Shown here: piece by piece, positions 1-30,839 of the stretch
How positions within the stretch are numbered: position 1 is the stretch's first letter
How the letters are laid out: each line of letters opens with the position of its first letter
Sequence record: OR258281.1
Direction: 5' to 3' (one strand)
Length of the DNA stretch: 64,000 bases
Position numbers and translations under genes: made by a program
Notes under the pieces: model-generated
Told to the model about the DNA's origin: nothing
The model's input: the letters and a program-made list of their open reading frames with translations, nothing else
Database searches by the model: none

Positions 1-1500
1 AGATCGCCATTACAATTTTATAAAAATAGCACTTAATGTTAAGTACTAAATTATGGTTAATGGTATAATTATAATGAGATTAGTGTGTACTGGAATGTTA
101 TAAAATACGAATATTCGTTTACTAATAATTTGTAAATGTCAATCCTAAAAAATCTGGTTAGACCTCTAGAAAAAAGACGTTTCAAGGAAATTTTGAAGTA
201 CCTTTGAGTACTGGAGAAAAAGTTGGAAGAACAGTAAAAAAAATGTTGAAACATCAGGTGATAGGTGGTATAGTCTTATCACGGTGAAGGAAGAAGGGTA
301 ATTACCCTGAGCCTGGAACTGAGGTTAAACTATCAGGAAGATAGTAACCGAGCATAGACAATAAAATTACCTATGGGCTTATGGGTAACGTTAGTAGTAC
401 TATATTATGAGACTATCCCCCTTATAGTATAGTGCCTGACATTAGTAATTAAAGATTATACACAGCAGTTATTATCTGACGGTACTCATAGTACTGGTAC
501 ATTACGGCCCCTCTCTTACCTGTACTGTATCAGTACTATTGAGTGCCATCAGATACTAATTTAGCAGTATCGGTAAAGTTGCTGCGAGAGAGTTTCTTTA
601 CGTTTGTCTTTCCTCAAAGTGTATATTGGTACTCACTGTCCAGAGTACTCCAATCGCCATATTTTAGCGAGGCAAGGATGCCGCATTTTTTAAGGATGAA
701 AGTTACCCTCAGAAATTAATCCGATAGAAACAATAATCCCTTGTTATAGTACTTCATGGTTATAATTAGTTTGCTAATTGTTTTGAGAGAAATAATTCCA
801 TAGGTAATCATTAGCATCCTAATCATTTCAGGCGTGATAGTCGTACCCGCGATAATTAGCATCCTAATGATCACTTGCGTTATTACTTTTTTTGTGATAC
901 ACGGGTACGACTATACGCACCGCCGATCATGGTTAGATCGCCAGCGTTTACATTTCCGTGTAAGTTTTTAAATTACAATCATAGTACTATATCGTTTCAG
1001 AAAAATCAAATAAATTTTTCGATTGTAAAGATTGATTATTTTGTTTGACAAGATAGGTTAGAATGTAGTACTATATCACTAATCCAGCGAAATGGACTTG
1101 CCCTATAGGGTGGGTAGATCTGTCTATAGTTTGTTATATGAATTTTGGGCAGATCTACCCGCCCACGAGGGTCAAAGCGTTATCTGCCAATGACTTTATA
1201 ATACTATAGTACTTCAGGTTATGCAAGGATTATTTTGAATTGATTTAATAGTTTTTCAATGATAAGGTACTATTACGATTCATTATCCTATATAGGTTAA
1301 CGTGATGAAAAACAAATACAATCAGCCATACTTTCGCGGTATCAGTGTACTTGTTTTCCCATCAAAGAAAAGTTAATTTCAGATACTTTAGTACTGAACA
1401 TCTGTGAACGTGTAATGATCGTGGTTCGATTGTGTGGTGATTTGCATCGAAAAAATGGCCCATTTTTGTTCATGGGTAAACCCTTTGCTTTTTTGTGAAA
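1..1500. other. Non-coding region with direct and inverted repeats and convergent promoters, possibly near a genome end or terminal repeat
   Basis: No credible ORF; ATTAGCATCCTAAT at 810-823 and 855-868; 13-bp inverted repeat ATAGTCGTACCCG 837-849 / CGGGTACGACTAT 902-914. Confidence 0.6.
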
Positions 1501-1851
1501 ATCGTGTAAAAATGAGAAATTCCGGTTAAAGTGGAAAACTCATGATCTTAAGTATAGTCTTCAAGCCGTGTGAGCGTAGTTCAGGCGGCTTTTTTGTTTA
1601 TGACAGTACTAAGGTACTTTTACGGTTATCTGGTACTGTGAGTACTATAGAGGACGTACACGCGTTGTTATATGACGCATATGTAAAGTTACATAATACT
1701 GGCTATCGTGGTTTGGTGCATTTGCAGTTCTATGAGTACTATAGTTCTAAAGAGAATGTACAGTACTTTACGAGGTTCAAAAAAAGTTATCCTAGACACA
1801 TAGAAGTACTTGATCTTTAGTTTTGAGTACTATATACTAACTGGAGGATAT

Positions 1852-2097
1852 ATGCCACAAAGAATATTAAAAGGTACAGAATCTGATTTTGCTCAATTCA
1901 AACGGAAACGTTTTATTGCTATTATTACCGATGATGATGTAATGCATTTTGCGGTACGTTCATTGGATTTAGATAAGAAGCAACAAATCATTCATTGCAA
2001 TGGTGGTTCTGGTCGGTTCTTTGATGAAAGAAGTACTACAATTAGGGAATACATAGGTACTAAATTTAAAGTACTCGCATCTAGAGAATTTTATTGA
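1852..2097 (+). CDS. Hypothetical protein
   Basis: ORF; start moved to the ATG after GGAGG. Confidence 0.7.
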   Translation: MPQRILKGTESDFAQFKRKRFIAIITDDDVMHFAVRSLDLDKKQQIIHCNGGSGRFFDERSTTIREYIGTKFKVLASREFY

Positions 2098-2159
2098 TTT
2101 TTAGTACTTGGTACTGTATAGTACTTACATCGAAAGCAAACATCTATGGGGATAGAGAA

Positions 2160-2420
2160 ATGAGTAAGTCATATAGTGCAACGATGATTGTTAATGGTAC
2201 TACAGGTAAGCCAATAGCTGCTAGTGGTTCTTTCCGTAATATCAGTATTGACGGACGTTTATCGTTAGAGAATGCGAAGAACGTTGCTCGTGAAGCCTTT
2301 AAGAAAGAAGGCGAATATATGGGATTTGCGATTGAACGTACTGAAAAGTTTGTTGAATACAAAAATCCCGTAATGGTTGATACAGTACTAAAGAGTACTG
2401 ACGTTGCTTTCTTGTTTTAA
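2160..2420 (+). CDS. Hypothetical early protein
   Basis: GGGGATAGAGAAATG RBS; start corrected. Confidence 0.75.
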   Translation: MSKSYSATMIVNGTTGKPIAASGSFRNISIDGRLSLENAKNVAREAFKKEGEYMGFAIERTEKFVEYKNPVMVDTVLKSTDVAFLF

Positions 2421-2502
2421 AGTACTAATTAAAAGTACCTTGCATAAGTTATCAGGGTACTTTATAATTAGCACAACAACAAACATCTATGGGGATAGAG
2501 AA

Positions 2503-2988
2503 ATGACAAACGTTAATGTAAGTACTGGTATTTCATACGGCGTTATTAATGCTAATGTTATTGATGGAGATGTTTTACATAACATTTCTTTTGGTTCAAA
2601 CAGTATCGATATTACGATGTTAAGTCTTCGGATTGATCACGCACAAAGTCAGGAAGATATTAATTTTGTACTTCCTGTAATTTCATTAAGTGAAAGTGCT
2701 AACCGCTTTTACAATCGCGTGCAGGAAGCATTAGACGCTACCAGCATTGATTGGGATTCTTTCTACACTGAGCATGAAGAGATTAACAGCGATGTATACA
2801 GTGCGATTGTTGACGGTTGTGAAGTACTTTATAGTACTGATAGCAATACAATCACTGTGATCGATTCACCGTACACGGATAAATTTGCACGTTGTTCTCC
2901 TTGCTATCCTGGTGCCGGGGATCTGAATACCCGCGACAATGATGGCATTAATACTTACACTGTACCTAGCGATTGGATTGTAGCATGA
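2503..2988 (+). CDS. Hypothetical early protein with a RCSPCYPGAGDL Cys motif
   Basis: Cassette promoter and RBS; start corrected. Confidence 0.8.
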   Translation: MTNVNVSTGISYGVINANVIDGDVLHNISFGSNSIDITMLSLRIDHAQSQEDINFVLPVISLSESANRFYNRVQEALDATSIDWDSFYTEHEEINSDVYSAIVDGCEVLYSTDSNTITVIDSPYTDKFARCSPCYPGAGDLNTRDNDGINTYTVPSDWIVA

Positions 2989-3353
2989 AAGTGCGGATAG
3001 CCATTAAGTCAGGTAGTACTTTCCAGTACTGTGAAGGTTCAGTGTTGGAAAGTAATTTTCCACGGGTACTAAAAGAATTGTACTATAATGATAGTTTCCT
3101 TTCTTTACGGAAATTGATTGCTGGTGGTTCTTTTCAGGTACATGGTGAAGTACTTAAACGTGTTAAATCACCGGTTAAGTCTTGCAGTACCTGGGAAGGA
3201 TTAACAAAAGATTGCGTAGTACTTTTCTTTGATACTAACATAAATTACCTGTACTTTTCGCCATATAGCATGTATAGTAATGGTGTACGACAGAAAACGA
3301 AGATTAGTACTAAACATTCTGATTCTTTCAATAACGCGTTACTTTGTGCATAG
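2985..3353 (+). CDS. Hypothetical protein
   Basis: ATGA overlap with the upstream stop. Confidence 0.7.
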   Translation: MKVRIAIKSGSTFQYCEGSVLESNFPRVLKELYYNDSFLSLRKLIAGGSFQVHGEVLKRVKSPVKSCSTWEGLTKDCVVLFFDTNINYLYFSPYSMYSNGVRQKTKISTKHSDSFNNALLCA

Positions 3354-3362
3354 GCGGTTTAT

Positions 3363-3557
3363 ATGGTTATGGAATTGATTGGCCTGTACTTCCTGATTGG
3401 GTTCTTTGTTAGTCCAGTAGTGTACCGTATGGATCAGGTATGTGCTTCTGATTGCGGCCCGTTAACTGATATGTTGATTGCGGTTATTGTCTGGCCTTTC
3501 TTTTGGGTACTGGTAGTATATAACGTACTGACGGACAAGCCTGATAATTCATTCTAA
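3363..3557 (+). CDS. Small membrane protein
   Basis: Two hydrophobic segments. Confidence 0.65.
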   Translation: MVMELIGLYFLIGFFVSPVVYRMDQVCASDCGPLTDMLIAVIVWPFFWVLVVYNVLTDKPDNSF

Positions 3558-3832
3558 TTAGTACTTGAGGCGTTTTCTGATATGGTATTGTTTCAGTACT
3601 ATATCGGAAGACGCCTTTTATTGTTATTGCGAATGCTTCTCATTTACACTTATAGACACATATACACGCCCCTCGGGGACAGGTTTAATATAGCATTCTG
3701 AAGTACTTAACGCAAGGAAAAGAAATAGTATTTTAATTAGTATTAGTACTTAAAAAGTACTTAAAAAGTACTTGCAAAGTATTAGGTACTATAGTACTAT
3801 TATTACATCGAAACGAACGAGGGGATAGAGAA

Positions 3833-4105
3833 ATGTGGCAGATTATTAAAGTACAGGGTACAGTAGGTAAAGCGGTAAACATGGCGGTTCACAGTACTGA
3901 TAAATTACTTAATCATGTAATCCTTCAGAATCATCTTTCAAAGGATTTTGGTAATTTTGTAACTATCGAGTACTTAGAAACAGTTGAAGTACCAGATTTT
4001 AAACTTAACCACAAGGTTGAGCGTGTAATTGCTTTGGATGATATTAAAGCAAGATTTGTAGAAGATACTACTTCATTTGAAGATGATAATAGCGAAGGTA
4101 ATTAA
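3833..4105 (+). CDS. Hypothetical early protein
   Basis: Own promoter and RBS. Confidence 0.75.
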   Translation: MWQIIKVQGTVGKAVNMAVHSTDKLLNHVILQNHLSKDFGNFVTIEYLETVEVPDFKLNHKVERVIALDDIKARFVEDTTSFEDDNSEGN

Positions 4106-4187
4106 GTACTAAAAGTATATTAAAAGTACCTTGCAATATATCTTAGGGTACTTTATAATGTACTTATACCAACAAGGGGATAGAGAA

Positions 4188-4472
4188 ATGACAAATACTA
4201 CTGAAAACCGTAAATTCTACGTGTTGAAAATCAGCGAAAATATTGGTGAGTACGAAGCCAATTCTAAAATACTGGTACAAGTGAAGCCGGATGATCTGGA
4301 TCAATACGTTGAAGATCTTCTGAAAGATTCATGGCGTGGTGAAGCCGACTATAACGAAGAAGATCAAGTTTTTGAAAATGGCGAAGTTTCCTGGTACTTA
4401 ACTGAAGCGATTGAAGTAAAAGACGATGTAGCACAGTACTTAATCCAAATGAATATCTTAAATCTGTTGTAA
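4188..4472 (+). CDS. Hypothetical acidic early protein
   Basis: Cassette promoter and RBS; start corrected. Confidence 0.8.
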   Translation: MTNTTENRKFYVLKISENIGEYEANSKILVQVKPDDLDQYVEDLLKDSWRGEADYNEEDQVFENGEVSWYLTEAIEVKDDVAQYLIQMNILNLL

Positions 4473-4554
4473 GTACTAAGTACTATTAAAAGTATCTTGC
4501 TTAATTAAGTAGGGTACTTTATAATGGTACTTATACAAACAAGGGGATAGAGAA

Positions 4555-4746
4555 ATGACCATTCATTTAATTGCTGTTATTGATTCTAATGGTGCTGGTG
4601 CTCTGGTAACGTTTGAGTCTTCTTCAAGTGATTATGAGGAAGTACAGGAACAATTAGAAAACTGGTTATCAGATGAAGGATATGATAGTACTTATATCAT
4701 CATTGATGATATTCAAAGCTCTAAGCGGGTAGTCAACGGTTTATAA
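4555..4746 (+). CDS. Hypothetical acidic early protein
   Basis: Cassette promoter and RBS. Confidence 0.8.
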   Translation: MTIHLIAVIDSNGAGALVTFESSSSDYEEVQEQLENWLSDEGYDSTYIIIDDIQSSKRVVNGL

Positions 4747-4822
4747 AGTACTATTAAAAGTATCTTGCAATATAATGTAGGGTACTTTATAATGGTACTT
4801 ATACAAACAAGGGGATATAGAA

Positions 4823-4948
4823 ATGGTTGATATTGAAAAAGTACGTGAAGTTATGGAACTACTGCGTGATCAGGGTTTTGTTAATGCTGATGATGATGAA
4901 GAGTTAGATACAGTAACAGAACTTGCATTTAACGCTTTCAATGATTAA
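4823..4948 (+). CDS. 41-aa acidic early protein (not in the ORF track)
   Basis: MVDIEKVREVMELLRDQGFVNADDDEELDTVTELAFNAFND, lying between two cassette promoters with an RBS. Confidence 0.75.
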   Translation: MVDIEKVREVMELLRDQGFVNADDDEELDTVTELAFNAFND

Positions 4949-5032
4949 GTACTGAAGTACTATTAAAAGTATCTTGCAATATATTGTAGGGTACTTTATA
5001 ATGGTACTTAACGAATCAACGGGGATATAAAA

Positions 5033-5269
5033 ATGGGTTCATATCGTATTACTAACAAAGATATCAATGAGAAGATTGATATCTTAAACGAGATGTTTAA
5101 GAATCGCGGCGTTGAGATTGTATTCAAAAATTCACCGCGTAATGATTATGCAGCGGTTGATTACCGTAAAGGTGAAGACAATCTGAATTTCATTTCCGGC
5201 GTTAGTAATCGCGAATGTTACAATATGTTAGAATGTGCGATTTCCGCGATTCACTTGCTAAGTGATTAA
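5033..5269 (+). CDS. Hypothetical early protein
   Basis: Cassette promoter and RBS. Confidence 0.8.
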   Translation: MGSYRITNKDINEKIDILNEMFKNRGVEIVFKNSPRNDYAAVDYRKGEDNLNFISGVSNRECYNMLECAISAIHLLSD

Positions 5270-5361
5270 GTACTTCAGTACTGAAGTATTATTAAAAGTA
5301 CCTTGCAATATATTGTAGGGTACTTTATAATGATACTTACCTTAACAAAGGGGATAGATAA

Positions 5362-5661
5362 ATGCAAGTTAACCTTCATGCCACCAGCTTTCGACTGCGT
5401 GATGATACTGAATCACTAAAAGAAACTGTCGGGCTTGTAAAGTTCCTGGAAGACCATAAAGTACCATTTACCCGGTATACTACGCCTAAAACCTTACAGA
5501 GTGGTATTACCTTCCCTGAAGAAAAGCGGGTACAGTGGCACGAAAACGATCGGGCTGTAGAAATTCCATGCAGTACTATTGAAGAGTTACAAAAGTACTG
5601 TAAAGATTATGATTGTACTTTTATAGTACATGACGAATACATACAAGTTACTTTCCCGTAA
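5362..5661 (+). CDS. Hypothetical early protein
   Basis: Cassette promoter and RBS. Confidence 0.8.
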   Translation: MQVNLHATSFRLRDDTESLKETVGLVKFLEDHKVPFTRYTTPKTLQSGITFPEEKRVQWHENDRAVEIPCSTIEELQKYCKDYDCTFIVHDEYIQVTFP

Positions 5662-5729
5662 TTATTAAAAGTACCTTGCAATTATTATCAGGGTACTTTA
5701 TAATACTTACATATTGAAAGGGGGATAAT

Positions 5730-6101
5730 ATGTATCAGAACATTGAAGTACTTAACACTAAAGAACGCCGGGAAGAAATTGAAAAGTTAGGCAAGATGGC
5801 ACTTGAGACTAATCTTAAGCACAGTACCATTACCCGCTTTTACAAACCTGGTGATGTACGTCATTATGACTTTGATAAGCTGACGCCGGATCTGATTGGC
5901 AAAGTAGTACGCATTGAGTACTACAGTACTGGCAACAATCCCGAAACTGGTATCTGGTCAGGTTGTTATCGTGAGATAATTGGTACTGTAACATACCTGA
6001 CGCCGGGTGTAATTACTAATGTTGGTTATCTGGTACTGGATGGCAATAAGTGTATAAGTGCACATTCAGGCCACGACTTTACACTTGAGGTACTACAATG
6101 A
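5730..6101 (+). CDS. Hypothetical early protein
   Basis: Cassette promoter and RBS. Confidence 0.8.
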   Translation: MYQNIEVLNTKERREEIEKLGKMALETNLKHSTITRFYKPGDVRHYDFDKLTPDLIGKVVRIEYYSTGNNPETGIWSGCYREIIGTVTYLTPGVITNVGYLVLDGNKCISAHSGHDFTLEVLQ

Positions 6102-6328
6102 TCCTGACTCAACACAAAGTAGCAGTAGCCTTGCATAGTATCAGTACTGTTATGCTTAAGTACAGTATTTGTGCTATGGCTGCGGCCTGCGATGGATATA
6201 CGGATAAGCGTATTGAAATCATGATGCAAAATGGTATCAGTGCAGAAGACGCTATTATCCTTGAACGGTTAGAACCGGGTGAGCTGGTGGAATTTGACCT
6301 GGGTAGTGATGCCATAACTTATAATTAG
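6098..6328 (+). CDS. Hypothetical protein
   Basis: ATGA overlap; terminator follows. Confidence 0.7.
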   Translation: MILTQHKVAVALHSISTVMLKYSICAMAAACDGYTDKRIEIMMQNGISAEDAIILERLEPGELVEFDLGSDAITYN

Positions 6329-6337
6329 TACTAAAAT

Positions 6338-6365
6338 AAGCCTTGACTAGTTCAGGGCTTTTTGT
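6338..6365 (+). terminator. Intrinsic terminator overlapping a sigma70 promoter (TTGACT 6343 - 17 bp - TATCTT 6366)
   Basis: AAGCCTTGA-CTAGT-TCAGGGCTT followed by a T-run. Confidence 0.7.
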
Positions 6366-6568
6366 TATCTTAATACCGTCCCCGAGGGGCCGGGAAATGT
6401 AAGTACTTAATGAAATGATAATCATTCGCATTAGCAATCGATTCTAAGCGTGTATCTATATAGAGGGAATGCAACGGGTCGGGTTTAGTACTAAAACGCT
6501 TTATAATGCTTCTGGTGCATTATAAATAGGATTAGTGATTTAGTACTAAACCAAAGGAAGTTTTTATA

Positions 6569-6811
6569 ATGATTAAGCATACAGACATTAACGCAATTCA
6601 GAAATGGCAGGCAGTACCATTTAGCCAGCTAGGTCAACTACTACAGTCAGAAGGTTTTCGATTTGCAAAGGCATTCAGTACTGATGAGATCAGGATCTTC
6701 AAGTCTGACGATAACAAGTACACGATAGTTTTTAACGGTCAGTTGGCTAAGGTGTATCAAGCAGGAAATATGAGACAGTACATTCATATGTTCAGTGTAG
6801 TAAAAGGATAA
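6569..6811 (+). CDS. Hypothetical protein
   Basis: ORF with AAGGA RBS; terminator at about 6813-6836. Confidence 0.75.
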   Translation: MIKHTDINAIQKWQAVPFSQLGQLLQSEGFRFAKAFSTDEIRIFKSDDNKYTIVFNGQLAKVYQAGNMRQYIHMFSVVKG

Positions 6812-7950: not shown

Positions 7951-8046
7951 GATGTAACGGGGCGGTATACGCCCCATTCTAAGAGGCTTTTGCAAAGTAC
8001 TAGTACAGTTGGATAGTGTTTTATAAAAGTCTCTTAAAATGAACTA

Positions 8047-8075
8047 CAGGACACTCAATTGAGTGTCTTTTTTTT
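8047..8075 (+). terminator. Intrinsic terminator
   Basis: GGACACTC-AATT-GAGTGTCT followed by a T-run. Confidence 0.8.
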
Positions 8076-9147: not shown

Positions 9148-9158
9148 GGTAATATATA

Positions 9159-9380
9159 ATGTTAAACTTATCTTGTGGTGCAAGAGTTAAATTTTCCGGT
9201 ACTTTACCTGGCGGATATGAAATTGAAGGTACTGGAGTTGTAAAGACACAAATCGATGATCATTGTAGTGTTTACATCGGTACTATTAAAGTAAATGGCG
9301 AGGATGTTACTAAAAAGTACAGTGCGGAAATTTCCTACCTTATACCCATAGGAATAATTAAGTCAAGTACCCCGGCATAG
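9159..9380 (+). CDS. Hypothetical protein
   Basis: ORF; terminator follows. Confidence 0.7.
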   Translation: MLNLSCGARVKFSGTLPGGYEIEGTGVVKTQIDDHCSVYIGTIKVNGEDVTKKYSAEISYLIPIGIIKSSTPA

Positions 9381-9576
9381 GCTGGGGATTTTTTTTGAGT
9401 ACTTTTAAATTCTCAGGACAGATCTACCCGCCCCTCGGGGTCAGTATTAGAATAGCAAACCAGGTACTTAAAAGCAAGGAAAAGAAATAGTTTATTTCGG
9501 TACTTAATACTATATAGTACTTGCAATGTAATTAGTATTGTAGTACTATTATTGTATTGAAACGAAGGGGGATTGT

Positions 9577-12901: not shown

Positions 12902-13105
12902 GTAGTACTTGATAAATTTTACACATAACTACCCACCCCTCGGGGTCACTGTTACTATAGCACATAGTGCTAATTACGCAAGGAATTATGTTCAAAAAGT
13001 AGAACTAAAAACAAAGAAATATATTATTAAAATAGTACTTAATTCCCCTTGCAGTACTTAATAGTTTTTGATAATATAACTGTATTGAAGCAAGGGGATA
13101 TGAAA

Positions 13106-14529: not shown

Positions 14530-14705
14530 TTGCACTTAAGGACAATAGTCATTAGGTGCATGGTACTAATCAGTACCAATAACGTTTAGAGTAATTGCAT
14601 TGTACATGACGAAAGAACATCCTGCAAGGGGTGTATTTTGTGTGTAGTCCATTCTCCTGGTATGTTCTTTTAACGAATTACCCTTGCATACCAGGAGCTT
14701 TTTAT
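14530..14705 (+). ncRNA. Candidate structured RNA of about 170 nt
   Basis: Promoter TTGCAT near 14498; no ORF; 11-bp stem CTCCTGGTATG 14654-64 / CATACCAGGAG 14687-97 followed by a T-run. Confidence 0.35.
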
Positions 14706-14779
14706 GTTATTATTTTTATCGACCCCGAGGGGCGGATAGTTATATCTAAATTTTAGTACTATTACGGTACTGAAAAATC

Positions 14780-14808: not shown

Positions 14809-14822
14809 ACTGGTATAAAATT

Positions 14823-15375
14823 CTGAATGGTGTACCCGGTTAGTAGTGTTAAGTACTTAAGAGTTAGTACTTGATTGGTACAATACAATAATCCTGATCT
14901 TATCGAAAATGTAGATAGCAGATGAGCAGTCCATACAGTGCGATGTGCAAACGAGACCCGTGTAAATTACTCCAAGTTAATTCAGAGGACACGGCAATGC
15001 GGCACAATAAAGGTACTCAATAATACTGAGAAGTACCCTTGATAGACATATATGGTAAACACCATACCAAAGGTATAAGGGAGTTTACAGTACTAAAAAG
15101 GTTCTTTAGTGCTCTGGATGTATAATATAGATCCGTCCAGTTTTTGTCAAAGGATTTTTCCAGTACTGTAAACAGGTATTTGATTAGTTTGTGTTGATTA
15201 AGTACTTAGATACGTGATGAGCGTAGACCGTTGCAATAGAACACTAATAGGAAGAAACCGGGCAACCCGCTTCCGTCTGAATAAGAATTTAGTACACAAA
15301 ATGTTGATAGCACCAGCGTCAAGTTTCTTTCCCCCTTGTGGGGTATCGAAATGTATCAAAGAAACCGCGTCAAGT
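14823..15375 (+). ncRNA. Large structured ncRNA candidate, copy 1 (about 553 nt)
   Basis: Collinear homology to 48676-49262; 51-nt identical block at 14953-15003; compensatory changes in stems; no conserved ORF. Confidence 0.75.
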
Positions 15376-15594
15376 TATCATCATATAGTTGATTAAGTAC
15401 TTACAAGAGCGTAAGCGATTGGTGTACTTAATCACTAACGGTTTGTCAAAACCGTTTAGTACTAAAACCAGTACAAATACCAGTACTTAAGTACTACAAA
15501 AACTATTATTAAAAGTATTACAAATAGTACTTGTAGAACCAATACTATAAGTGTATAGTACTTACATCGAAACGAAATACAAGGAAGTAAAGAA

Positions 15595-18302: not shown

Positions 18303-18842
18303 ATGAAATTCAACGAACTTAACGAGAAACAACAAGCTAAAGTACTGGATATGTACCGTTATGCTGAAACTGGTTCTTCTGATTGGTACTCTGAAATCAA
18401 ATCAGATTTTCATGAAGAGTTAGAAGCCGCTGGCTTTAATAATGTTGATAGTCAATTCAGCGGTTTTTGTGTCCAGGGCGACGGGGCAAGTTTCACCTCT
18501 GAAGATATCAACGTCAAGGAAGTACTGACGCATTTAGGAAAGTACCAGTACTATGCACAGAATCACGGTTCATATGTAATTGATAATATGACCGCCGAAA
18601 TTGTACGTAATGACTCGCATTATGTACATGAATACACGATGAGTATTAACATCGTAGAAGGCGATGATGTTTCAGAAGTTAAAAAAGAAATTCTTGAGTA
18701 CGCACGCAACAAGTGCCGTGAGTACTACAAGAAGCTGAATGAAGAATCTGATCGCCTTGAATCGGATGAATCTGTAAAAGAGTACATCGAAGCAAATGAT
18801 ATCGAGTTCGATGTGAAGAAAGAGAACGTGACTTATATCTGA
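18303..18842 (+). CDS. Acidic protein resembling the plasmid family annotated as antitoxin of toxin-antitoxin stability system
   Basis: KFNELNEKQQAKVLD...DW...FSGFCVQGDGASF motif; start corrected. Confidence 0.55.
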   Translation: MKFNELNEKQQAKVLDMYRYAETGSSDWYSEIKSDFHEELEAAGFNNVDSQFSGFCVQGDGASFTSEDINVKEVLTHLGKYQYYAQNHGSYVIDNMTAEIVRNDSHYVHEYTMSINIVEGDDVSEVKKEILEYARNKCREYYKKLNEESDRLESDESVKEYIEANDIEFDVKKENVTYI

Positions 18843-21883: not shown

Positions 21884-22093
21884 GAATAAGCACAATCGGC
21901 CTACTATCCCCCTTGCACAATCAGGCCGGTTGTGCTACCTTATTACTTGTCCTCTAGGGGCGGGGAGATATAGTACTAAATGTAAATGATTCTCATTCGT
22001 AATAAAATAATTAAGAATAGTACTAAAAAAGACTTGCACTATAGTTAAGGAAATATTATAGTACTTAACAGGAACAGAGAGGGGGATAACGAG

Positions 22094-22789: not shown

Positions 22790-23692
22790 ATGGTTATGTC
22801 GTATTCAAACAAAACAGAAAAGCTGATTCCAAGTATCGGTCGTGAACTTCGGGCTAAGTCTCGCCCCCTTACCAATACTGAAATGTTTCAGGCTGCACCG
22901 TCACTGTTTCAGGCACAGGCACACGATTCGCGTTCAAGCCGTTTCAAGCCTATCAGTACTATTGACGTAGTTGATGCGTTACGCACAGAAGGCTTTGAAC
23001 CCTTCTCGGTACTGCAATCCCGTGCTCGCGATGAAAGTAAAATCGACTTCACTAAACATCAGGTACGTTTCCGTAAACGTGAAGAACTGGAAGGCGAACT
23101 GTTGTTGCCTGAATGGAATGAAATCATTCTGGTTAATGCCAACGATGGTACAAGTTCTTACCAGGTAATGGCTGGTGGATTCCGCCAGGCTTGTGCAAAT
23201 GGTTTAGTACTCGGAGACATTAACTGTACTCAACGTGTACACCATAAAGGTTCTAACATCCAAAAAGATGTTATCGAAGGCGTGTACACAGTAGTAAATC
23301 AATTCAAAATGATTGATGAATACAAAGAAGATATGCAACGTACTATGTTGTCAATTGAAGACCGTAATGGTCTGGCAATGGCTGCAATGATCTTCGCCGG
23401 GTTTGATTATCAGGATCTTCCTTATGATCATAAGTTACTGCTGAAAACCCATCGCCATGCTGATAGCGGTCACGATCTCTGGAGTACTTTTAACGTAGTA
23501 CAAGAGAACCTTGTAAAAGGCGGCGTGAAGTATAAGAAGTTTGACGAAGAAAAACAAACAGTACGTAATGTGAGTACTAAAGGTATTACCAGCATCCAAA
23601 AGAATATCCAGGTTAATCAGGGCGTCTGGACTGCTGCTAAAATGCTGATCAATAGTAATCAGGAAAAACAGGACGTACTTGCTTTAGTCTAA
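22790..23692 (+). CDS. DUF932 family protein
   Basis: HDSRSSRFKPISTIDVVDALRTEGF, FTKHQVRFR, EIILVNANDGTSSYQVMAGGFRQACANGLV, DLWSTFNVVQENL. Confidence 0.85.
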   Translation: MVMSYSNKTEKLIPSIGRELRAKSRPLTNTEMFQAAPSLFQAQAHDSRSSRFKPISTIDVVDALRTEGFEPFSVLQSRARDESKIDFTKHQVRFRKREELEGELLLPEWNEIILVNANDGTSSYQVMAGGFRQACANGLVLGDINCTQRVHHKGSNIQKDVIEGVYTVVNQFKMIDEYKEDMQRTMLSIEDRNGLAMAAMIFAGFDYQDLPYDHKLLLKTHRHADSGHDLWSTFNVVQENLVKGGVKYKKFDEEKQTVRNVSTKGITSIQKNIQVNQGVWTAAKMLINSNQEKQDVLALV

Positions 23693-24253: not shown

Positions 24254-24619
24254 ATGTACTTACCTAATAATGTATCATTAATATCAGTTGATGGTTCAGT
24301 GAGAATCAGTAAATGTACAGATGAAGTTAATCCGTACCTGGTTTATCATTTAGGTACTTGCACAGTGCATAAAAGTACCTTAGAGGAAGCTATCGATCAT
24401 TGTACTAAACGTTATCAAGCTCGCTTCCCAAAAGAAACAAAAGTACTTGCAAAAGATATTAAACGTGGTATGATCGTTTGTACAGAAGGTTATCCATACG
24501 GTTCAGTTAAGTTCAATAACCGTAATGTTGATGAAGACCAGGATCATCGCCAGTTAGTACTCTTCTCGCAAGATACTATTACGTTAGATTCCAGTGCTGT
24601 ACTGACAGTACTGAAATAA
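24254..24619 (+). CDS. Hypothetical protein
   Basis: GAGGG RBS; start corrected. Confidence 0.65.
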   Translation: MYLPNNVSLISVDGSVRISKCTDEVNPYLVYHLGTCTVHKSTLEEAIDHCTKRYQARFPKETKVLAKDIKRGMIVCTEGYPYGSVKFNNRNVDEDQDHRQLVLFSQDTITLDSSAVLTVLK

Positions 24620-25077
24620 TACCAAATATGGCCGGTACTTGACAAAACTCTATCCCCCTAGAGTCAAGTACTGGCCGCCTCTTTTTATCCCCAAAATACA
24701 TTTTTACCCTAACCCCTAATTGTATCACATCCTGAGCCAAAAAACAAGTCCGACCAGCACGAATTGCTTAGATGCGAATACGAATGATAATGATTCTCAT
24801 TTCAGTCAAAGGCCACATCTACCCGCCCCTCGGGGTCAGTATTAATATAACAGAACTGAAAAATAATTGCAAGTACTACAGCACTATTTGTTTAAATGCG
24901 AATGAGAATCATTTACAACAATGATCGCATCTCCCCACCCCTCGGGGTCAACTACATAGTACTAAACCAGTACTGAAAAAGCAAGGGAATATATCAAAAT
25001 AAAGGTACTTATTTGTACTTGCAGAATCATTTCAGGAAAGGTATAGTACTTACATCGAAATTACGGGGATAGACAAA

Positions 25078-25485
25078 ATGAATAAAGAACAGGCTATTGC
25101 AGTACTGCGAGTACTGAAGAACATCCGCACTTGTGTAGATAATCAAGATACTTATATCCCTGGCGTGGGCGATTGCCATAATCAGGATGCAAGATATCGC
25201 AGTCCGTTTAACCTGTCTAAATCTTTCGGGATTTGCTGGCATGTATACGCCCACACATCCGGCGATCTCGGGATCGATATTGAGTTTCTTAAACCGGTAT
25301 TTGTTGAATTAGGTTATAAGTCTGATGCCTACCCGGTGGAAAGTACTGTACTGCCTGAAGGCGACAATGATTATTGGTTTGAAAATCGTAGTAATTACGA
25401 TCTGTACTTCAGCGATAACAAGTACTCAAAAGTACGGTATGAGTTATTAGAAAAGCTGATTAAGTACTTTGAAAATAAATTGTAA
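25078..25485 (+). CDS. Hypothetical early protein
   Basis: Promoter and RBS. Confidence 0.8.
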   Translation: MNKEQAIAVLRVLKNIRTCVDNQDTYIPGVGDCHNQDARYRSPFNLSKSFGICWHVYAHTSGDLGIDIEFLKPVFVELGYKSDAYPVESTVLPEGDNDYWFENRSNYDLYFSDNKYSKVRYELLEKLIKYFENKL

Positions 25486-25584
25486 TTGGTAATAATCAGT
25501 ACTTGCAAAGTACAGTACTATCAATTACTATTAGTACTCAAAGCGGGGAAATGACTTCCCCGCCGTAATAGGGGATTAAAGATT

Positions 25585-25893
25585 ATGGCACGTAAAACCA
25601 CTAAGATTTGTTCACTGATGTTATCAGAGCACGATTCACAACGTAATGCGATCCTTCTCAATAAAAGCACCACAGATAAAGAGAAAGTACTGCAATTGCG
25701 TGAAATTAATGCAATGATAGAATCGTTGCTGATGAAATCAAACTGCTATCATGGTTTCCAGTACCCGGATTTAGAGGGTTTGCGTAAAGTTCAGGCAGAA
25801 TATGAATCCACGCCAGGCAGCGACTACGGTACTGTAGTACTTGATTCTGTAGCTGAAAATAACCGTATGTATATCGGTCTCCGCGACTGGTAA
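25585..25893 (+). CDS. Hypothetical early protein
   Basis: Promoter, 5-prime hairpin leader and RBS. Confidence 0.8.
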   Translation: MARKTTKICSLMLSEHDSQRNAILLNKSTTDKEKVLQLREINAMIESLLMKSNCYHGFQYPDLEGLRKVQAEYESTPGSDYGTVVLDSVAENNRMYIGLRDW

Positions 25894-25989
25894 AAGTTTT
25901 TATTAAAAGTACCTTGCATATATCGTAGGGTACTTTATAATGAAATCTAAATCAGAGAATGATTCTTTGATGTACCAGGGGGAAAGATT

Positions 25990-26199
25990 ATGGCACTGTA
26001 TACCCGTTCTTTATTCAGTACTAAAAACATCGCGACACAAGTCGAAAGATATTACATGATGGTTTGTGATGCTCCACGCCGAATCAGTAAGGCGGAATAC
26101 CTGGAGTACAAACAAACGGCGATCCGTAAAGATTCAATGAGTACCGAAATTACTAAAAAATGCATCCGTCATTTTACTACCTGTTACTATGACGTATAA
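25990..26199 (+). CDS. Hypothetical early protein
   Basis: Cassette promoter. Confidence 0.75.
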   Translation: MALYTRSLFSTKNIATQVERYYMMVCDAPRRISKAEYLEYKQTAIRKDSMSTEITKKCIRHFTTCYYDV

Positions 26200-26428
26200 A
26201 ATATTTTCGAAATAATGTAATTGCCGCTTGTATTCCAGGCGGCAGTTTGATACATTGAAGTTGACCCCGAGGGGTGGGGAGATCCAATCATATACATAGC
26301 AGGCTAATAGTTCAGTACTGAACTAACAAAAATAGTACTAAAATAAATTTGCAATATATCCATTCATCCTGTACATTAGTACTTAACAGGTAAGCAATGA
26401 CGCTTAACCTAATATGGGGATTAAAATT

Positions 26429-26899
26429 ATGAATGCTATTCAGTTCGCTGCAAAGGTTAAAGAATCATTCCTGAAGTACTTCCCTAATGGTTTCTTAGGA
26501 TCTAGTAAGTACCAGTTAGGCGGCGGGATTCACTTCACGGCTGGCCTGGTTTCGAATGCTAACGATATTTCTTCCGGGTACAGGGTAAATGATATCATTT
26601 CCCTTTCTTTCGGTATTCACGACAATGTTAAGTACAACACAGAAGAAGAGATCCAGGGTAAGATCGTGATTGAATTTGTACAAAACAGCTTCAGTACTAA
26701 ACCCGAGCCAGGTTCTTACATGGCGATGGGCCGGGTAAAGATCCCCGCACGTAAGATCAACAACACACCAGAAAAAGCAATTGAAAGCCTGGATAAAGTA
26801 TTCCAGAAAACAGCAGAATTGATAAAAGCTGAAGTACTTAAGAATAACTTATACCGCCAGGAAAACATAAACGAAAAGTACTTAAACAGTATCAAATAA
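26429..26899 (+). CDS. Hypothetical early protein
   Basis: RBS; start corrected. Confidence 0.8.
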   Translation: MNAIQFAAKVKESFLKYFPNGFLGSSKYQLGGGIHFTAGLVSNANDISSGYRVNDIISLSFGIHDNVKYNTEEEIQGKIVIEFVQNSFSTKPEPGSYMAMGRVKIPARKINNTPEKAIESLDKVFQKTAELIKAEVLKNNLYRQENINEKYLNSIK

Positions 26900-26979
26900 A
26901 TTTGCTTATAGTACCGAGTACTGATATATTACTACTCAAAGGGGGAAATGATTTCCCCCTAATAATGGGGATTAAAATT

Positions 26980-27402
26980 ATGAGTACTTTTACTTTAGCA
27001 ACATATACTTACAACAACACCACTAATGAAGTACTTCACCATACTAACAGTGAACGTACTAAACTTTGGTACGCTAACCACGGCATCTCTAAGCACCTGG
27101 ATTCATTGCAGGAAATGGAGATCCCCGCGTCAAACCTGCTCATGATCGCCCTGGGCTGGGCTGGTGGCACTATCCATATGGTAGCCAGTGAAACAGGTCT
27201 GACTGTCCAGGAGATTTTGGATCTGGAACAGGTGAAGCCGGTACAATCCCGCGAGGAAATTACCCCGTATGGCTTCGGTATGATGTACGGTACTAAGAAC
27301 ATGGATCAGTATAAAGGAAATGTACAGTACTGGCGTGGAGTATTAGAAAATACTATCCAGTACAAAAAAAGTAAAATTAATTATAAATTGTACTTGAACT
27401 AA
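26980..27402 (+). CDS. Hypothetical protein, paralog of 30021-30371
   Basis: LMIALGWAGGTIHMVASETGLTVQEILDL...YKGNVQYWRGVL. Confidence 0.8.
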   Translation: MSTFTLATYTYNNTTNEVLHHTNSERTKLWYANHGISKHLDSLQEMEIPASNLLMIALGWAGGTIHMVASETGLTVQEILDLEQVKPVQSREEITPYGFGMMYGTKNMDQYKGNVQYWRGVLENTIQYKKSKINYKLYLN

Positions 27403-27470
27403 GGAACTGTATTTGATACCTTAGTACTCAAAGGGGGAAATGATTTCCCCCTGTAATTGGGGATAGTAAA

Positions 27471-27938
27471 ATGAACAAATTCAAAGCGGTTTCAGAAGTA
27501 CTCAAGAACGGCAGGAAATCAGTAGATGGTACTGAATGGAATTACATGTTCCAGGGTACTCGCTTCGCTTGCATCTCTAAACAGGATGGAAAGTATTTTG
27601 TACACTATGAAGGCCGCACTACAGCATTGCAATCTTATCCTAATTTTATGAAAGCGATTGCTTTTGTCGCGGATCTGTATTGCCGTCTGTATAACTCCGC
27701 TGTGTGTGCTGGTGGTACTGAAGTAACTTTCTATCGTGACATCACTGTTTATGTCGGTACTGATGGAAAGCCTTACACTAAGCTGGCCGGGAAGTTCTCA
27801 TTAGTCCAGGTATTCGGGAACTGCTATCAGCACCTCTCAAAGTACTATAGCGATGTAATGTCTGATATTGAAATCGGTTACTTTGCGGATGTAATGGAAC
27901 AGGCTATTAGTGATTATTTGAACCGCGACGACGAATAG
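27471..27938 (+). CDS. Hypothetical early protein
   Basis: Promoter, hairpin leader and RBS. Confidence 0.8.
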   Translation: MNKFKAVSEVLKNGRKSVDGTEWNYMFQGTRFACISKQDGKYFVHYEGRTTALQSYPNFMKAIAFVADLYCRLYNSAVCAGGTEVTFYRDITVYVGTDGKPYTKLAGKFSLVQVFGNCYQHLSKYYSDVMSDIEIGYFADVMEQAISDYLNRDDE

Positions 27939-28016
27939 TACTGGTATTGCTCCACCAATAATGTATAATAAGTACTTCGGGGAATCAAATGGTTCCCCAT
28001 TACTGAGGGTAGCGGG

Positions 28017-28493
28017 ATGAATACTGACAACAATTTGCAGGTACTGGCTGAAGCAATGCAATCCATCGTAAACGCAAACGGTGTTGATGCATGTATCGCG
28101 TACTGTGAAAGTGTTTATTCTAGTACCTTCAGAACTGATTCTGTTGTTACACTTAACGATTTTGATTGTGATTGTGATTGTGACCCGGCTGAAGTACTCC
28201 GTACCTTAACCGATTCAGCCGCCGAATATCTTGCAGTCTTAAACGGTGTAGTACTCAATGAACCTTTAGGGTTCACTCCATCAATCGATGATGAAGATTT
28301 CGAGTACTATCCAGACCCTGGCGAGATGAACGCCGAACTGATACAGCCATATAAAGAGCAGGCACGGGCTTTAGTACTCAATAACTTGGAGTTCGTTATC
28401 CTGGTTAACTACAAAGGGGAAGAAGCCGGATATATGGTAAAAGAAGCCGCTCAGAGTTTAAGTCTGTACAAGGGAAAGTACAACTACGTTTAA
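28017..28493 (+). CDS. Hypothetical acidic protein with a DCDCDCD repeat
   Basis: 158-aa ORF. Confidence 0.7.
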   Translation: MNTDNNLQVLAEAMQSIVNANGVDACIAYCESVYSSTFRTDSVVTLNDFDCDCDCDPAEVLRTLTDSAAEYLAVLNGVVLNEPLGFTPSIDDEDFEYYPDPGEMNAELIQPYKEQARALVLNNLEFVILVNYKGEEAGYMVKEAAQSLSLYKGKYNYV

Positions 28494-28646
28494 CATCCCC
28501 CGAAATATTCCCACATACGGATCGTGTGGGATATTTCACCCTTTCTTGTACTAATAGCACTTTATGTTCTTGCAATATATCCCACGATAAACGATAATAA
28601 GTACTCAAGGCAAGCATGATGCAAAGCCAACCAGGGGATAAAGAAC

Positions 28647-28871
28647 ATGAAATTAGTAATCCGTGATCATAAGTTCGGTGACATTCTTTCAGTAGTTTTT
28701 GATATTACTATCGCACCAACTGCTAATAGTACCGTAACAACTGAAGATGGGTCATATGAAATTTTTGAAGTAGCATATGATTACAAAAACGGGCATGTAA
28801 ATGCATACACAGAAGAATATGATCATGAGCCGGTCGAGTACTACACCAAGACCGCCGAATTGATTAAATAG
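28647..28871 (+). CDS. Hypothetical early protein
   Basis: Promoter, hairpin leader and RBS. Confidence 0.8.
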   Translation: MKLVIRDHKFGDILSVVFDITIAPTANSTVTTEDGSYEIFEVAYDYKNGHVNAYTEEYDHEPVEYYTKTAELIK

Positions 28872-29659
28872 TCTCTTTACAAATCTTTACAAACCAGCCC
28901 TTGCACCCGCAGGGGCTTTTTGTTATCTTAATACTGACCCCGAGGGGCGGGGAGATGTAGCTGTATATAATAATGATTCTCATTCGCATTAAGTACTAAC
29001 ACGTCGCAATCATTCAGTACCCAATCATTTTATACAAAATCATTAGCATACTATTAATCACATATAATAGTAATCACCGTGAGTTACTATTTGCTTACTA
29101 AGCTAATGATTAAAGTACAAAACTATCAGATCCCAAATCATTAACAATGTAATAATCACTATAGTTATTATCTATAATCAAATCATTTAGTACTAAACAG
29201 TTAGGATGCTAACTATTACATGAAGTACTACAAGATAAGATATAATTAGCACGCTAAGTAATTCGCTGCCTGGACGCATTTCGCCGGGAATTACAAGATG
29301 CAGAAACTATATCAGTAGTCAATAGCTAATAGTACTTTATTTCAATTTTGCTTAATTCTGACATTATATACAGTACTCTAAAACGCTCTGTAACGCATTC
29401 TAAGCGTTTTTACCCAAAAGCTAACCAAGTGTACTGGTACTACACAGATCTCTTCACCACGAGCGAAATAGTATATGTCAATACTAAACTATAAAAATAA
29501 ATGAAAAATAATAGTACTTCAGGCTTGACTTATATAGTACTGAAGTACAATTAAGTACTGAAAAATAATTATAGAAATCGCTTGCCAGTACTGTACCAAA
29601 AGCGTATATTAGTAATCGAAGGGCGAGCATGATGCGATGCCTAATAGGGGATAAAGAAC

Positions 29660-29911
29660 ATGAAAGCACAATTCGTAGTAGTATCTAACTCAATGTTTAA
29701 TCTGAAAACTACTGGCGATCAGTCAGCTTATGAAGCGTTTAAAGCGATTTTTACTAAGCACTTCAATTCCTTTGATATTCGCCCACAAGCGGCACGCGGT
29801 ATCGAAAACATCACCGTGTACAAAACTACTGGTGCAGCCCTGGCCGCTTTTGAAGCAGAAGCCCTGGCAGCAGGTATTGAGTTTCAGGAAGCAGAAGTTC
29901 CAAAATATTAA
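29660..29911 (+). CDS. Hypothetical early protein
   Basis: Promoter, hairpin leader and RBS. Confidence 0.8.
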   Translation: MKAQFVVVSNSMFNLKTTGDQSAYEAFKAIFTKHFNSFDIRPQAARGIENITVYKTTGAALAAFEAEALAAGIEFQEAEVPKY

Positions 29912-30020
29912 TATCAACCAGGGGCATTAAGTTGCCCCACTTGATTAAGTACTTTAGCCAGTAGAGTACTTAATCAAGTCCATCGCCGGACACAGTACAT
30001 CATGATTAAGGAACTGAAAT

Positions 30021-30371
30021 ATGAGCTTGTACTTATTGTTATCTGTATTGCTTGGGGAGTGCTTCAGTACTGGTGAAGAAGATTCACCTAATATACAGAA
30101 CTGTACTTTAGTACTCATCCGTGCACTGAACATGACTGATGGAGATGTGTACGCTTTAGCCAGGATCACCGGGCTGTCAGTACAAGATATCGTGAACCTT
30201 TCAACTCACGAGCACCAGACCCGCGAAGATGCTACCGGTATTAATGACTTCGGTCGCGGCAGAAACTTCGGGTACAGTCCTGACGAAATAGATAAGTTTA
30301 AAGGTAATACCGATTATTGGAAAGGTGTTCTATATAATCAATATTACAAAGAAAGTACTTTACTCGCTTGA
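30021..30371 (+). CDS. Hypothetical protein, paralog of 26980-27402
   Basis: LIRALNMTDGDVYALARITGLSVQDIVNL...FKGNTDYWKGVL. Confidence 0.75.
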   Translation: MSLYLLLSVLLGECFSTGEEDSPNIQNCTLVLIRALNMTDGDVYALARITGLSVQDIVNLSTHEHQTREDATGINDFGRGRNFGYSPDEIDKFKGNTDYWKGVLYNQYYKESTLLA

Positions 30372-30438
30372 GTACTTTCCTGTACAATAGAATCTCAATA
30401 GGGGAAATGATTTCCCCTAGCACCAGGGGATAAAGATT

Positions 30439-30636
30439 ATGACTAATACTGACGTTACCTTACTTGCTTCAAAGGCTCTTTCCTATCTGCACCTCGGAAC
30501 TTGCGAGGCTATCGAGAGGGTAGTAGGTAAGTTCACTGAAGAGAACAAAGATCTACATAGTGCGGTATTCGATGAACTGGAAGAAATTATGTACCCGCAT
30601 GGTAAAGGTGAAGATGCGGCGTACTACGAGTACTAA
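30439..30636 (+). CDS. Hypothetical acidic early protein
   Basis: Promoter, hairpin leader and RBS. Confidence 0.8.
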   Translation: MTNTDVTLLASKALSYLHLGTCEAIERVVGKFTEENKDLHSAVFDELEEIMYPHGKGEDAAYYEY

Positions 30637-30839
30637 TAAAATAAATTACTAATAGTACTAATCAGCCCTTGCATATGCAGGGGCTTTTTGTTATCTTAGT
30701 ACTGACCCCGAGGGGCGGGTAGATTTGTCTAAAATTTATTATCATTAAGTACTAAAAAGTACTTGCACTATATTGCTGGTGGATGTATATTGAGTACTCA
30801 AGGCAAGCATGATGCAAGCCACTATCAGGGGATTAGATT

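Follow-up and report, generated by a model that had tools for sequence, protein, structure and literature searches.

The described phage elements that come closest to the one considered here are the promoter-early stem-loop (PeSL) cassettes of T4-type phages (Arbiol 2010, PMC2839356; Comeau 2014, PMC4122927). The element is a short GC-rich motif that recurs 13 times behind host-type promoters in a stretch of 64,000 nucleotides (nt), called the window below, which corresponds with 100% identity to bases 1-64000 of Xanthomonas phage XaC1 (OR258281.1). Each of the sites is a self-contained non-coding transcription unit, in which a promoter of the host sigma70 type is fused to a conserved RNA module. 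Sequence comparison shows the XaC1 motif to be the short, local version of a non-coding RNA module of the Rak2/CBB/121Q jumbo phages. The longer form of this module occurs in the direct terminal repeats (DTRs) of phages XbC2 and CBB, of the E. coli 121Q-like phage WPEC3 and of uncultivated relatives. Its parts follow in the order promoter, first hairpin (HP1; a covarying stem with a GNGAAA loop), second hairpin (HP2; CCC-N3-4-GGG) and single-stranded tail (YG..A.WU.YRUCY). This two-hairpin long form is the ancestor-like one.

Like the PeSLs, the XaC1 units are repeated intergenic cassettes among small early genes and are near-identical within the genome, and in the upstream half of the plus-strand units a terminator-like stem-loop at the sigma70-like promoter was called by a scan at three copies and read by eye at three more. 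PeSLs, in contrast, run into a Shine-Dalgarno (SD) sequence and a start codon in gene orientation, whereas the XaC1 units carry a predicted transcribed RNA module without a ribosome-binding site (RBS) or an open reading frame (ORF), lie on both strands and include convergent pairs. No SD and start-codon end was found in the units, the next gene having its own promoter and RBS 47-700 nt further on. A plain PeSL cassette was rejected because this end is missing and about half of the copies are inverted.

A second group of comparable elements comprises the lambdoid nut sites (boxA/boxB), the put sites of HK022 and PR'-qut/6S RNA. These, too, have small hairpins close to the start of early RNAs that the host polymerase makes; the lambdoid ones act on the transcribing polymerase, as the module may do, and PR' is a further case of an "ORF-less" promoter, with a pause nearby. 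The GNGAAA loop of HP1, rich in purines, is reminiscent of the boxB loops, but HP1 combines a covarying stem of 3-4 bp with a hexaloop, compared with the 5-bp stem and GNRA-like pentaloop of boxB, and the short XaC1 copies have no HP1. The lambdoid signals differ further in being present once or twice per operon, as opposed to 13 copies in both orientations; no sequence is shared with them, and no N-, Q- or put-type partner is known. A boxA (CGCUCUUA-like) sequence, searched as YGCTCTTWA, has one match in the window (28352, minus strand; 2.3 expected), which is near no unit.

The jumbo phage PA5oct, the sole related phage with RNA-seq, is only distantly related to XaC1; its DTR is transcribed early by the host polymerase and yields abundant non-coding RNAs (ncRNAs; PMC7318152). 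Two of these, ncRNA001 and ncRNA002, resemble the units in coming from ORF-free regions of a long terminal repeat that are highly transcribed by the host polymerase (PMC7318152). They measure 236 and 451 nt, are single-copy loci and have no sequence or model similarity to the units, unlike homologues, and were rejected as such. RNA anti-CRISPRs, or solitary repeat units (Racr), are also promoter-driven short hairpin RNAs without an ORF in phage genomes, and one XaC1 copy bears what we take to be a superficial likeness to type I-C repeats. The XaC1 family differs from Racr in being kept in phages whose hosts have different CRISPR types, and a CRISPR-repeat mimic was rejected because a genome scan gave no arrays and members of the family occur in phages of Xanthomonas, Pectobacterium and E. 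coli alike. Among the genomes of 185,579 bacterial and archaeal species the exact motif gives two chance single matches, in GC-rich metagenome-assembled genomes, which likewise sets the motif apart from Racr and eliminates a host genomic element.

XaC1 is a jumbo myovirus of 348,967 bp that infects X. vesicatoria; it is reported to have non-permuted DTRs of the T5 type, 32,031 bp long, to encode two phage sigma factors, and to have Pectobacterium phage CBB as its closest BLASTn relative (PMC11273794). The DTR thus corresponds to window positions 1-32031. The G+C content falls from ~0.35-0.41 to ~0.29-0.34 near 32 kb, which fits the published boundary. All annotated genes between 1 and 34 kb are small, hypothetical and on the plus strand.

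When both strands of the window were scanned for GWCCCNNNNGGGYGGGKAGAT with up to two mismatches, 13 matches were obtained against 0.01 expected, a number reached by none of 100 shuffled sequences. They start at 1099, 6378, 14721, 21949, 26263, 28936 and 30704 on the plus strand and at 1153, 3660, 9422, 12927, 24817 and 24929 on the minus strand. All lie within 1099-30724, in the DTR, and none in the 32-64 kb region. BLAST of one unit against a phage collection gave nine places in the 349-kb XaC1 record, which local BLAST identified as exactly the nine strongest DTR copies; at this sensitivity, the rest of the genome has no others. The confinement to the DTR in XaC1 rests on the 64-kb window together with these BLAST place counts.

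Every copy (13/13) has a TTGnnn-N16-18-TAnnnT promoter upstream on the same strand. The distance from the end of the -10 box to the motif is 6-7 nt in 11 of the 13, which has a chance of ~5e-21, and 24 nt in the two that converge, at 1099 and 1153. Where the spacer is 6 nt, transcription would normally start at the motif's first G, which predicts an RNA beginning GA-CCC-N4-GGG. Seven copies follow the direction of the genes and six oppose it. The initial annotation, which was made from the sequence alone, had described these 13 copies in both orientations, with a promoter on the matching strand about 5-10 nt before 11 of them and six promoters against the gene flow, and the counts bear it out, as they do its example -35/-10 positions (6343/6366, 28901/28924, 30669/30692 and 24872/24849). 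Of the two copies that it placed farther from their promoters, at 1099 and 1151, the convergence and the greater distance hold, while the second copy actually spans 1153-1173. What it missed is the confinement to the terminal repeat, the longer two-hairpin form and the conservation across the jumbo-phage clade. The units, with HP1, HP2 and tail where these were delimited, are as follows.

1045-1125, plus strand: long-form unit, left convergent member; -35 box TTGACA at 1045, -10 box TACTAT ending at 1074, HP1 1084-1095 (CCA-GCGAAA-TGG), HP2 1101-1110 (CCC-TATA-GGG), tail 1111-1125; covariance-model E=8e-18.
1147-1226, minus strand: long-form unit, right convergent member; -35 box TTGCAT at 1226, -10 box TATTAT, degenerate HP1 (GGCAGATAACGC), HP2 and tail 1173-1147; the convergent pair recurs in XbC2, CBB and 40 further records.
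3626-3715, minus strand: short-form unit; -35 box TTGCGT at 3715, -10 box TATATT, motif 3680-3660, palindrome 3644-3632 (one mismatch); points back into the terminator of gene 6.
6343-6432, plus strand: short-form unit; -35 box TTGACT within terminator hairpin 6338-6360, -10 box TATCTT, motif 6378-6398, Fur-box-like palindrome 6414-6426.
9416-9477, minus strand: short-form unit; -35 box TTGCTT at 9477, -10 box TATTCT, motif 9442-9422; faces plus-strand terminator 9370-9387.
12921-12981, minus strand: short-form unit; -35 box TTGCGT at 12981, -10 box TATAGT, motif 12947-12927.
14684-14747, plus strand: short-form unit; -35 box TTGCAT, -10 box TATTAT, motif 14721-14741; ~100 nt upstream of a large conserved non-coding element.
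21913-22003, plus strand: short-form unit; -35 box TTGCAC, -10 box TACCTT, motif 21949-21969 (HP2 with a U-G pair), palindrome 21985-21997; promoter of the next gene at 22034.
24783-24872, minus strand: short-form unit; -35 box TTGCAA at 24872, -10 box TATATT, motif 24837-24817, palindrome 24801-24789.
24895-24984, minus strand: short-form unit in tandem with the preceding one; -35 box TTGCTT at 24984, -10 box TACTAT, motif 24949-24929, palindrome 24913-24901.
26228-26289, plus strand: short-form unit; -35 box TTGTAT in a hairpin, -10 box TACATT, motif 26263-26283; next promoter at 26349.
28901-28990, plus strand: short-form unit; -35 box TTGCAC in terminator 28896-28917, -10 box TATCTT, motif 28936-28956, palindrome 28972-28984; followed by ~700 nt free of ORFs.
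30669-30730, plus strand: short-form unit; -35 box TTGCAT in terminator 30664-30685, -10 box TATCTT, motif 30704-30724; next promoter at 30763.

The embedding of promoters in upstream terminators, also claimed at the outset, was called by the scan at three plus-strand copies (6338-6360, 28896-28917 and 30664-30685), where the terminator hairpin encloses the -35 box. At the other solitary plus-strand copies (14684, 21913 and 26228) the hairpins were read by eye only, and the same by-eye reading showed no such hairpin at the -35 box of the solitary minus-strand copies. The CCC and GGG arms of HP2 are almost constant and the loop centres CGAG, TCGT, TATA and CTAG vary between copies, just as first described. 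The motif is followed by no RBS or conserved ORF, again in line with the early description. Its use as an SD or start site of mini-ORFs was rejected: an ATG is present in about half of the copies, and the frames that start at the AGAT/G junction have 1-28 codons and are unconserved. Pairing of the motif with the RBS of the class-I promoters described next was dismissed as well, at most 4 bp being found by inspection.

The small genes of the DTR have expression signals of a different kind. Class-I promoters of the form ATTAAAAGTAcCTTGCAA-N17-TATAATGTACTTA, followed 20-30 nt on by GGGGATAGAGAAATG, are present in ~30 copies, all on the plus strand and each 55-60 nt before an ORF. The complete class-I cassette (window 2440-31125, plus strand) begins with a UP-like ATTAAAAGTAC and CTTGCAA, continues with N17, TATAATGTACTTA, ~15 nt and GGGGATAGAGAAATG, and precedes nearly every small DTR gene; these cassettes are themselves PeSL-like. 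Genes downstream of a unit mostly have a promoter of their own, placed 47-90 nt past the motif. As the DTR genes have their own class-I promoter and RBS cassettes, the promoters that carry the motif are supernumerary; unit 6378 is possibly the only promoter for the gene at 6569.

XbC2, a phage of a different genus with the same host as XaC1, has at least nine copies of the long unit in its DTR. This unit consists of aGGGGTTGACTTCGGTTAGCCCCTT (a UUCG-loop terminator enclosing the -35 box), TATAGT, ~9 nt, CCAGCGAAATGG, ACTAA, CCCTATAGGG and TGGCAAGATCCGTCC; the XaC1 copies at 1099 and 1153 are of this XbC2-like long type. The long unit of CBB carries CCCACAGGGTGCGGAGAT, and two IMG/VR contigs of ~371 kb also contain a long unit. 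A face-to-face pair ~1 kb from the left genome end, with the tails separated by TTATATGAATTTT, is kept in XaC1, XbC2 and CBB. BLAST with the CBB pair found 44 phage records, always in unannotated DNA, among them GAP32, the pEa_SNUABM phages, Serratia BF, Yersinia fHe-Yen9, 121Q, PBECO4-like and Klebsiella phages. Between phages, the units show no fixed association with orthologous genes.

A metagenome scan added XaC1-like contigs, AT-rich and AGTACT-rich and one of them 349 kb long, in which a -35/-10 pair is followed by 6 nt from the -10 box to the motif. The motif-promoter spacing, named beforehand as the feature on which the proposal of an RNA family would fall if it varied among relatives, is thus kept. 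The first IMG/VR match to the motif was discarded as a GC-rich chance match. A search of related phages with a covariance model, likewise suggested beforehand, used a model built from 14 XbC2-type copies only; it recovered the copies of CBB and WPEC3 (E = 1e-8 to 5e-3) and found nothing in the T5-like or PA5oct loci.

The following observations argue that the selected object is an RNA. In HP1, both-side changes occur in all three pairs (CG/GC/UA, CG/AU/GC and AU/GC/CG), and 99.6% of the cells are paired. The covariation score is 0.506, compared with 0.132 for shuffled alignments, none of 500 of which reaches it, and it drops to 0.08 or less when the partners are slid. The raw sequences contain at least 15 distinct complementary HP1 stems around a GNGAAA-like loop, including CCA/TGG, GCG/CGC, CAG/CTG, CCG/CGG, CGC/GCG, GGAA/TTCC, GGAG/CTCC, GAC/GTC, GTC/GAC, GGC/GCC and ACCG/CGGT. 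Since the stem covaries around a GNGAAA loop, selection acts on RNA rather than on a protein or simply on a DNA site. The purine-rich loop of HP1 and the tail are always on the strand of the promoter, even in the convergent pairs, which argues that both orientations are meant to be transcribed. The suggestion of a family defined at the RNA level is thus supported both by the compensatory changes in HP1 and by the spacing in the metagenomic relatives. Outside HP1 and HP2, a helix enclosing HP2 (GGAC...GUCC, taken from one minimum free energy fold) was rejected for want of covariation, a by-eye check of tail-internal hairpins across the variants yielded none that was consistent, and no covarying pairing was found inside the tail or between the tail and HP1.

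The module matches no known RNA family. The window contains no Rfam 15 match at gathering score, and the terminal repeats of XaC1, CBB and XbC2 contain nothing relevant in Rfam at E<=1, only spurious miRNA hairpin matches on the inverted pairs; a known RNA family was rejected on these grounds. No description of the module was found in the searched literature, and the CBB genome paper, in which promoters were sought with MEME, does not mention the element. We therefore class it as a new RNA motif of a general kind that is already known, namely phage promoter-proximal RNA elements or terminator-promoter cassettes.

The tail is a strongly conserved single-stranded part of the module. Among 59 distinct units, the 16 nt after HP2 have the consensus Y-G-S-N-N-A-R-W-U-N-Y-R-U-C-Y-A, with G2 at 97%, A6 at 93%, U9 at 100%, Y11 at 100%, R12 at 98% and Y15 at 95%; in the short form of XaC1 the tail reads YGGGKAGAU-NYGUCY. 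The sequence is unconserved beyond ~22 nt after HP2. The layout is that of a hairpin (HP2), a fixed 11 nt, an invariant pyrimidine-purine step and a G ten positions back. In a hairpin-stabilized pause, the nascent hairpin typically stands ~11-12 nt before the 3' end of the paused RNA, with G at -10, Y at -1 and G at +1. The tail resembles this arrangement, and with it the class I his-type and elemental pauses, in the distance of ~11-12 nt from the hairpin to a Y/R step and in the G at -10. The resemblance is a lead, and the geometry is compatible with the pause sites that the initial annotation had raised.

By combining these features, it is possible to propose how the units might work. The reading that we favor, at a little under an even chance, is that the module is a promoter-proximal signal in the nascent RNA, a hairpin-dependent pause or hand-off site. 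We infer from the promoter type, the T5-type DTR and the PA5oct RNA-seq that the units would be transcribed early by the host polymerase. The module would work on or through the nascent transcript. The 5' module of the nascent RNA would then act on the very elongation complex that has just made it. The polymerase would halt ~33 nt after the start site in the short form and ~55 nt after it in the long form, and there it, or its transcript, would pass to a conserved partner. The transcript could then be terminated or processed into a short RNA with a 5' hairpin, or the polymerase could be modified. In XaC1-like phages, the Fur-box-like palindrome 16 nt further on would add a probable DNA-binding checkpoint.

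Several points weigh against this proposal. The consensus for pausing is a loose one; position +1 after the putative pause is G in only 58% of the units, and the consensus leaves the invariant A6, U9 and U13-C14 of the tail unexplained. As the HP2 stem hardly varies, support for its pairing comes from one compensatory C-G to U-A event and a few wobbles, its loop being freely variable. The alignment that gave the HP1 covariation was fitted to the covariance model, and single-sequence folding is unremarkable, with z-scores of -1.7 to +0.6. The -10 boxes of the units (TATCTT, TATTCT and others) are weaker than those of the class-I promoters. The start sites, the pausing and the RNA ends in XaC1 and its close relatives are predictions. 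Finally, it is hard to see what a role in cis would achieve at the six copies on the minus strand or at the convergent pairs, downstream of which there are no genes.

These last copies are better explained if the units make a multicopy small RNA that acts in trans, an alternative that is a close rival though less probable than a pause or hand-off site. The 5' module would be freed by processing, polymerase collision or weak termination. Its target, for which it would serve as decoy, sponge or cofactor, could be a conserved protein of either host or phage, for instance a nuclease, chaperone or defense sensor; the RNA could build up rapidly from 13 gene copies, or 26 if the virion genome holds a second copy of the terminal repeat. 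The independence of the units from genes, their two orientations and their face-to-face pairs are what such an RNA would lead one to expect, as are the high copy number, the strongly conserved single-stranded tail and the abundant terminal-repeat ncRNAs made by PA5oct. The A6-R7-W8-U9 of the tail also resembles what we take to be the RNase E preference, RN/WUU. The weakness of this explanation is in the 3' ends. A scan for terminators (hairpin plus T-run), which is crude, was made within 150 nt of 36 units from four phages and found a terminator-like site at nine of them; XaC1 has two among its 13 units, and one more at 236 nt. A family of terminator-ended small RNAs is therefore not supported in general. 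The left-end plus-strand unit of XaC1 and XbC2, with a terminator-like site 19 nt after HP2, is favorable to a small RNA, and the minus-strand unit 12927 is followed ~245 nt on by a minus-strand terminator at 12731-12701, which predicts an RNA of ~250 nt wholly within an ORF-free gap. Defined 3' ends are otherwise lacking, conservation stops ~22 nt after HP2, the promoters are not of the strongest class, and no partner is known.

On either account the units might represent a new class of phage RNA signals made in the first minutes of infection, which we regard as a doubtful but real prospect. Such signals might reprogram the host polymerase as put and nut do, though unrelated to them and either independent of protein or dependent on a pre-early protein, or they might be high-copy decoy RNAs that neutralize a host nuclease or defense sensor. 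By analogy with T5, the terminal repeat may enter the cell first. If such a class exists, the convergent pair, which lies ~1 kb from the genome end, would have the specific task of producing short RNAs at the tip of the entering DNA. The Rak2/121Q/CBB jumbo phages are common and are considered for therapy and biocontrol, and their gene regulation is almost unexplored. A conserved multicopy module confined to the DTR would offer a handle on how they manage the host polymerase before any phage protein exists. Members of the group that infect E. coli K-12 carry the long form, which makes its function directly testable by standard methods. For annotators, the module is a marker of terminal-repeat or pre-early regions and draws attention to ORF-free gaps in which no gene should be called by force.

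The positions of the plus-strand units raise the question of whether they simply serve the genes downstream. The terminator would end the previous transcript, the embedded promoter would restart transcription, and the 5' hairpin would guard the mRNA from decay that depends on the 5' end. The hairpin does begin ~2-5 nt from the predicted 5' end (HP2 in the short form, HP1 in the long form), most plus-strand units are followed after 47-90 nt by the promoter of the next gene, with no terminator between, and the gene at 6569 may have unit 6378 as its sole promoter. A stabilizing leader is nevertheless unlikely: there is no gene that the six minus-strand copies or any of the convergent pairs could serve, the units are untied to orthologous genes between phages, and stabilization needs no CCC/GGG stem and tail that stay invariant across genera.

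An element acting at the DNA level is less probable still. It could be the operator of a shut-off repressor placed over the start site, or a PeSL-type terminator/promoter cassette whose repeats serve mainly to shuffle small genes by recombination. In the DNA, HP2 forms a dyad, the terminator and promoter architecture is shared with the PeSLs documented in T4-type phages (PMC4122927), and the units 28896-28956 and 30664-30724 are near-identical. The palindrome AATGAnnnTCATT, extended TGTAAATGAttcTCATTCGCATT, starts exactly 16 nt after the motif in six XaC1 copies (positions 3632, 6414, 21985, 24789, 24901 and 28972), and this fixed distance also speaks for a DNA site. All five perfect matches in the window follow a motif at 16 nt. 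It matches what we take to be the core of the E. coli Fur box, AATGATAATCATT, perfectly in the copy at 6414. The palindrome recurs in the metagenomic XaC1 relatives, is absent from the fetched terminal regions of XbC2, CBB and WPEC3, and is found once in the T5-like phage SuperGirl, in the untranslated region upstream of the A2/A1 genes. PeSLs end in an SD and a start codon and follow gene orientation, which the units do not. An operator would not be expected to shift as the module does, from +2 in the short form to ~+26 in the long form; the HP1 stem covaries; and the module is conserved across genera far beyond the needs of a recombination substrate.

Speculative, like the decoy sites that the initial annotation also raised, is the idea that the G-rich start of the RNA stays hybridized to the DNA beside an AT-rich stretch and primes replication or stimulates recombination, by analogy with T4 oriF/oriG or ColE1 RNA II. 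Two features that would suit such an R-loop origin are present, namely G clusters on the non-template strand at the start site and an AT-rich stretch (AAAATTC...) after the tail, and the Rak2/CBB/121Q group carries replication genes like those of T4 and relies on the host polymerase (PMC5259590). R-loop sites are quite improbable all the same, as the covariation of HP1 and its strand-specific loop point to a free, folded RNA and not a hybrid, 13 origins in 31 kb are excessive, XbC2 tails are less G-rich, and the idea has no direct evidence. The likeness of GGCGGGTAG to an ops/RfaH site needs two 1-nt insertions and is not kept in relatives, and a chance or low-complexity artifact is excluded by the number of copies and the constancy of their offset.

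The surroundings of the units have other unusual features. The Fur-box-like form TGTAAATGAnnnTCATTCGCATT, 16 nt after the motif, is limited to the XaC1-like lineage and one T5-like phage, and AATCATT half-sites are clustered in the ORF-free stretches ~780-880 and 28960-29200. The palindrome AGTACT is over-represented 10-18x (241 against 13 expected in the DTR, 124 against 12 in 32-64 kb); it frequently builds terminator stems and flanks promoters, and its excess extends to coding DNA and to XbC2, CBB and WPEC3. The window has 12 copies of the E. coli Chi octamer GCTGGTGG where 0.44 are expected; all lie in the DTR (3120-30782), nine of them on the plus strand, and the octamer is also enriched in the DTRs of XbC2 and CBB.

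The plus-strand segment 29339-29508 has 70-84% identity to unannotated DNA just upstream of the pre-early A2/A1 genes of T5-like phages, including SuperGirl, Eos, AAS21 and KKP_3711, where the counterpart region is known only as conserved untranslated repeats. This segment was rejected as a structured RNA, no covariation having been found in it.

A much larger non-coding element, ~580 nt long, is present on the plus strand at 14817-15400, where it begins ~100 nt downstream of unit 14721, and at 48647-49262. The two copies share 73% identity, the indels between them do not come in multiples of three, and each is preceded by its own TGAAAY-N17-TATACT promoter. Relatives with 65-76% identity are found in ~60 Rak2-like jumbo phages, always unannotated and in 2-6 places per genome. 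It has no Rfam match, and in a six-sequence alignment 38 of 93 predicted pairs have compensatory changes on both sides; it is probably an undescribed large structured RNA.

Two proteins encoded in the DTR may be mentioned in addition. XaC1_41 (18303-18842, plus strand) has homologues in ~200 phage records, one of them annotated as "RNA polymerase binding protein", and XaC1_53 (22790-23692, plus strand) belongs to the DUF932 proteins; the DTRs of CBB, GAP32 and XbC2 have conserved versions of the two.

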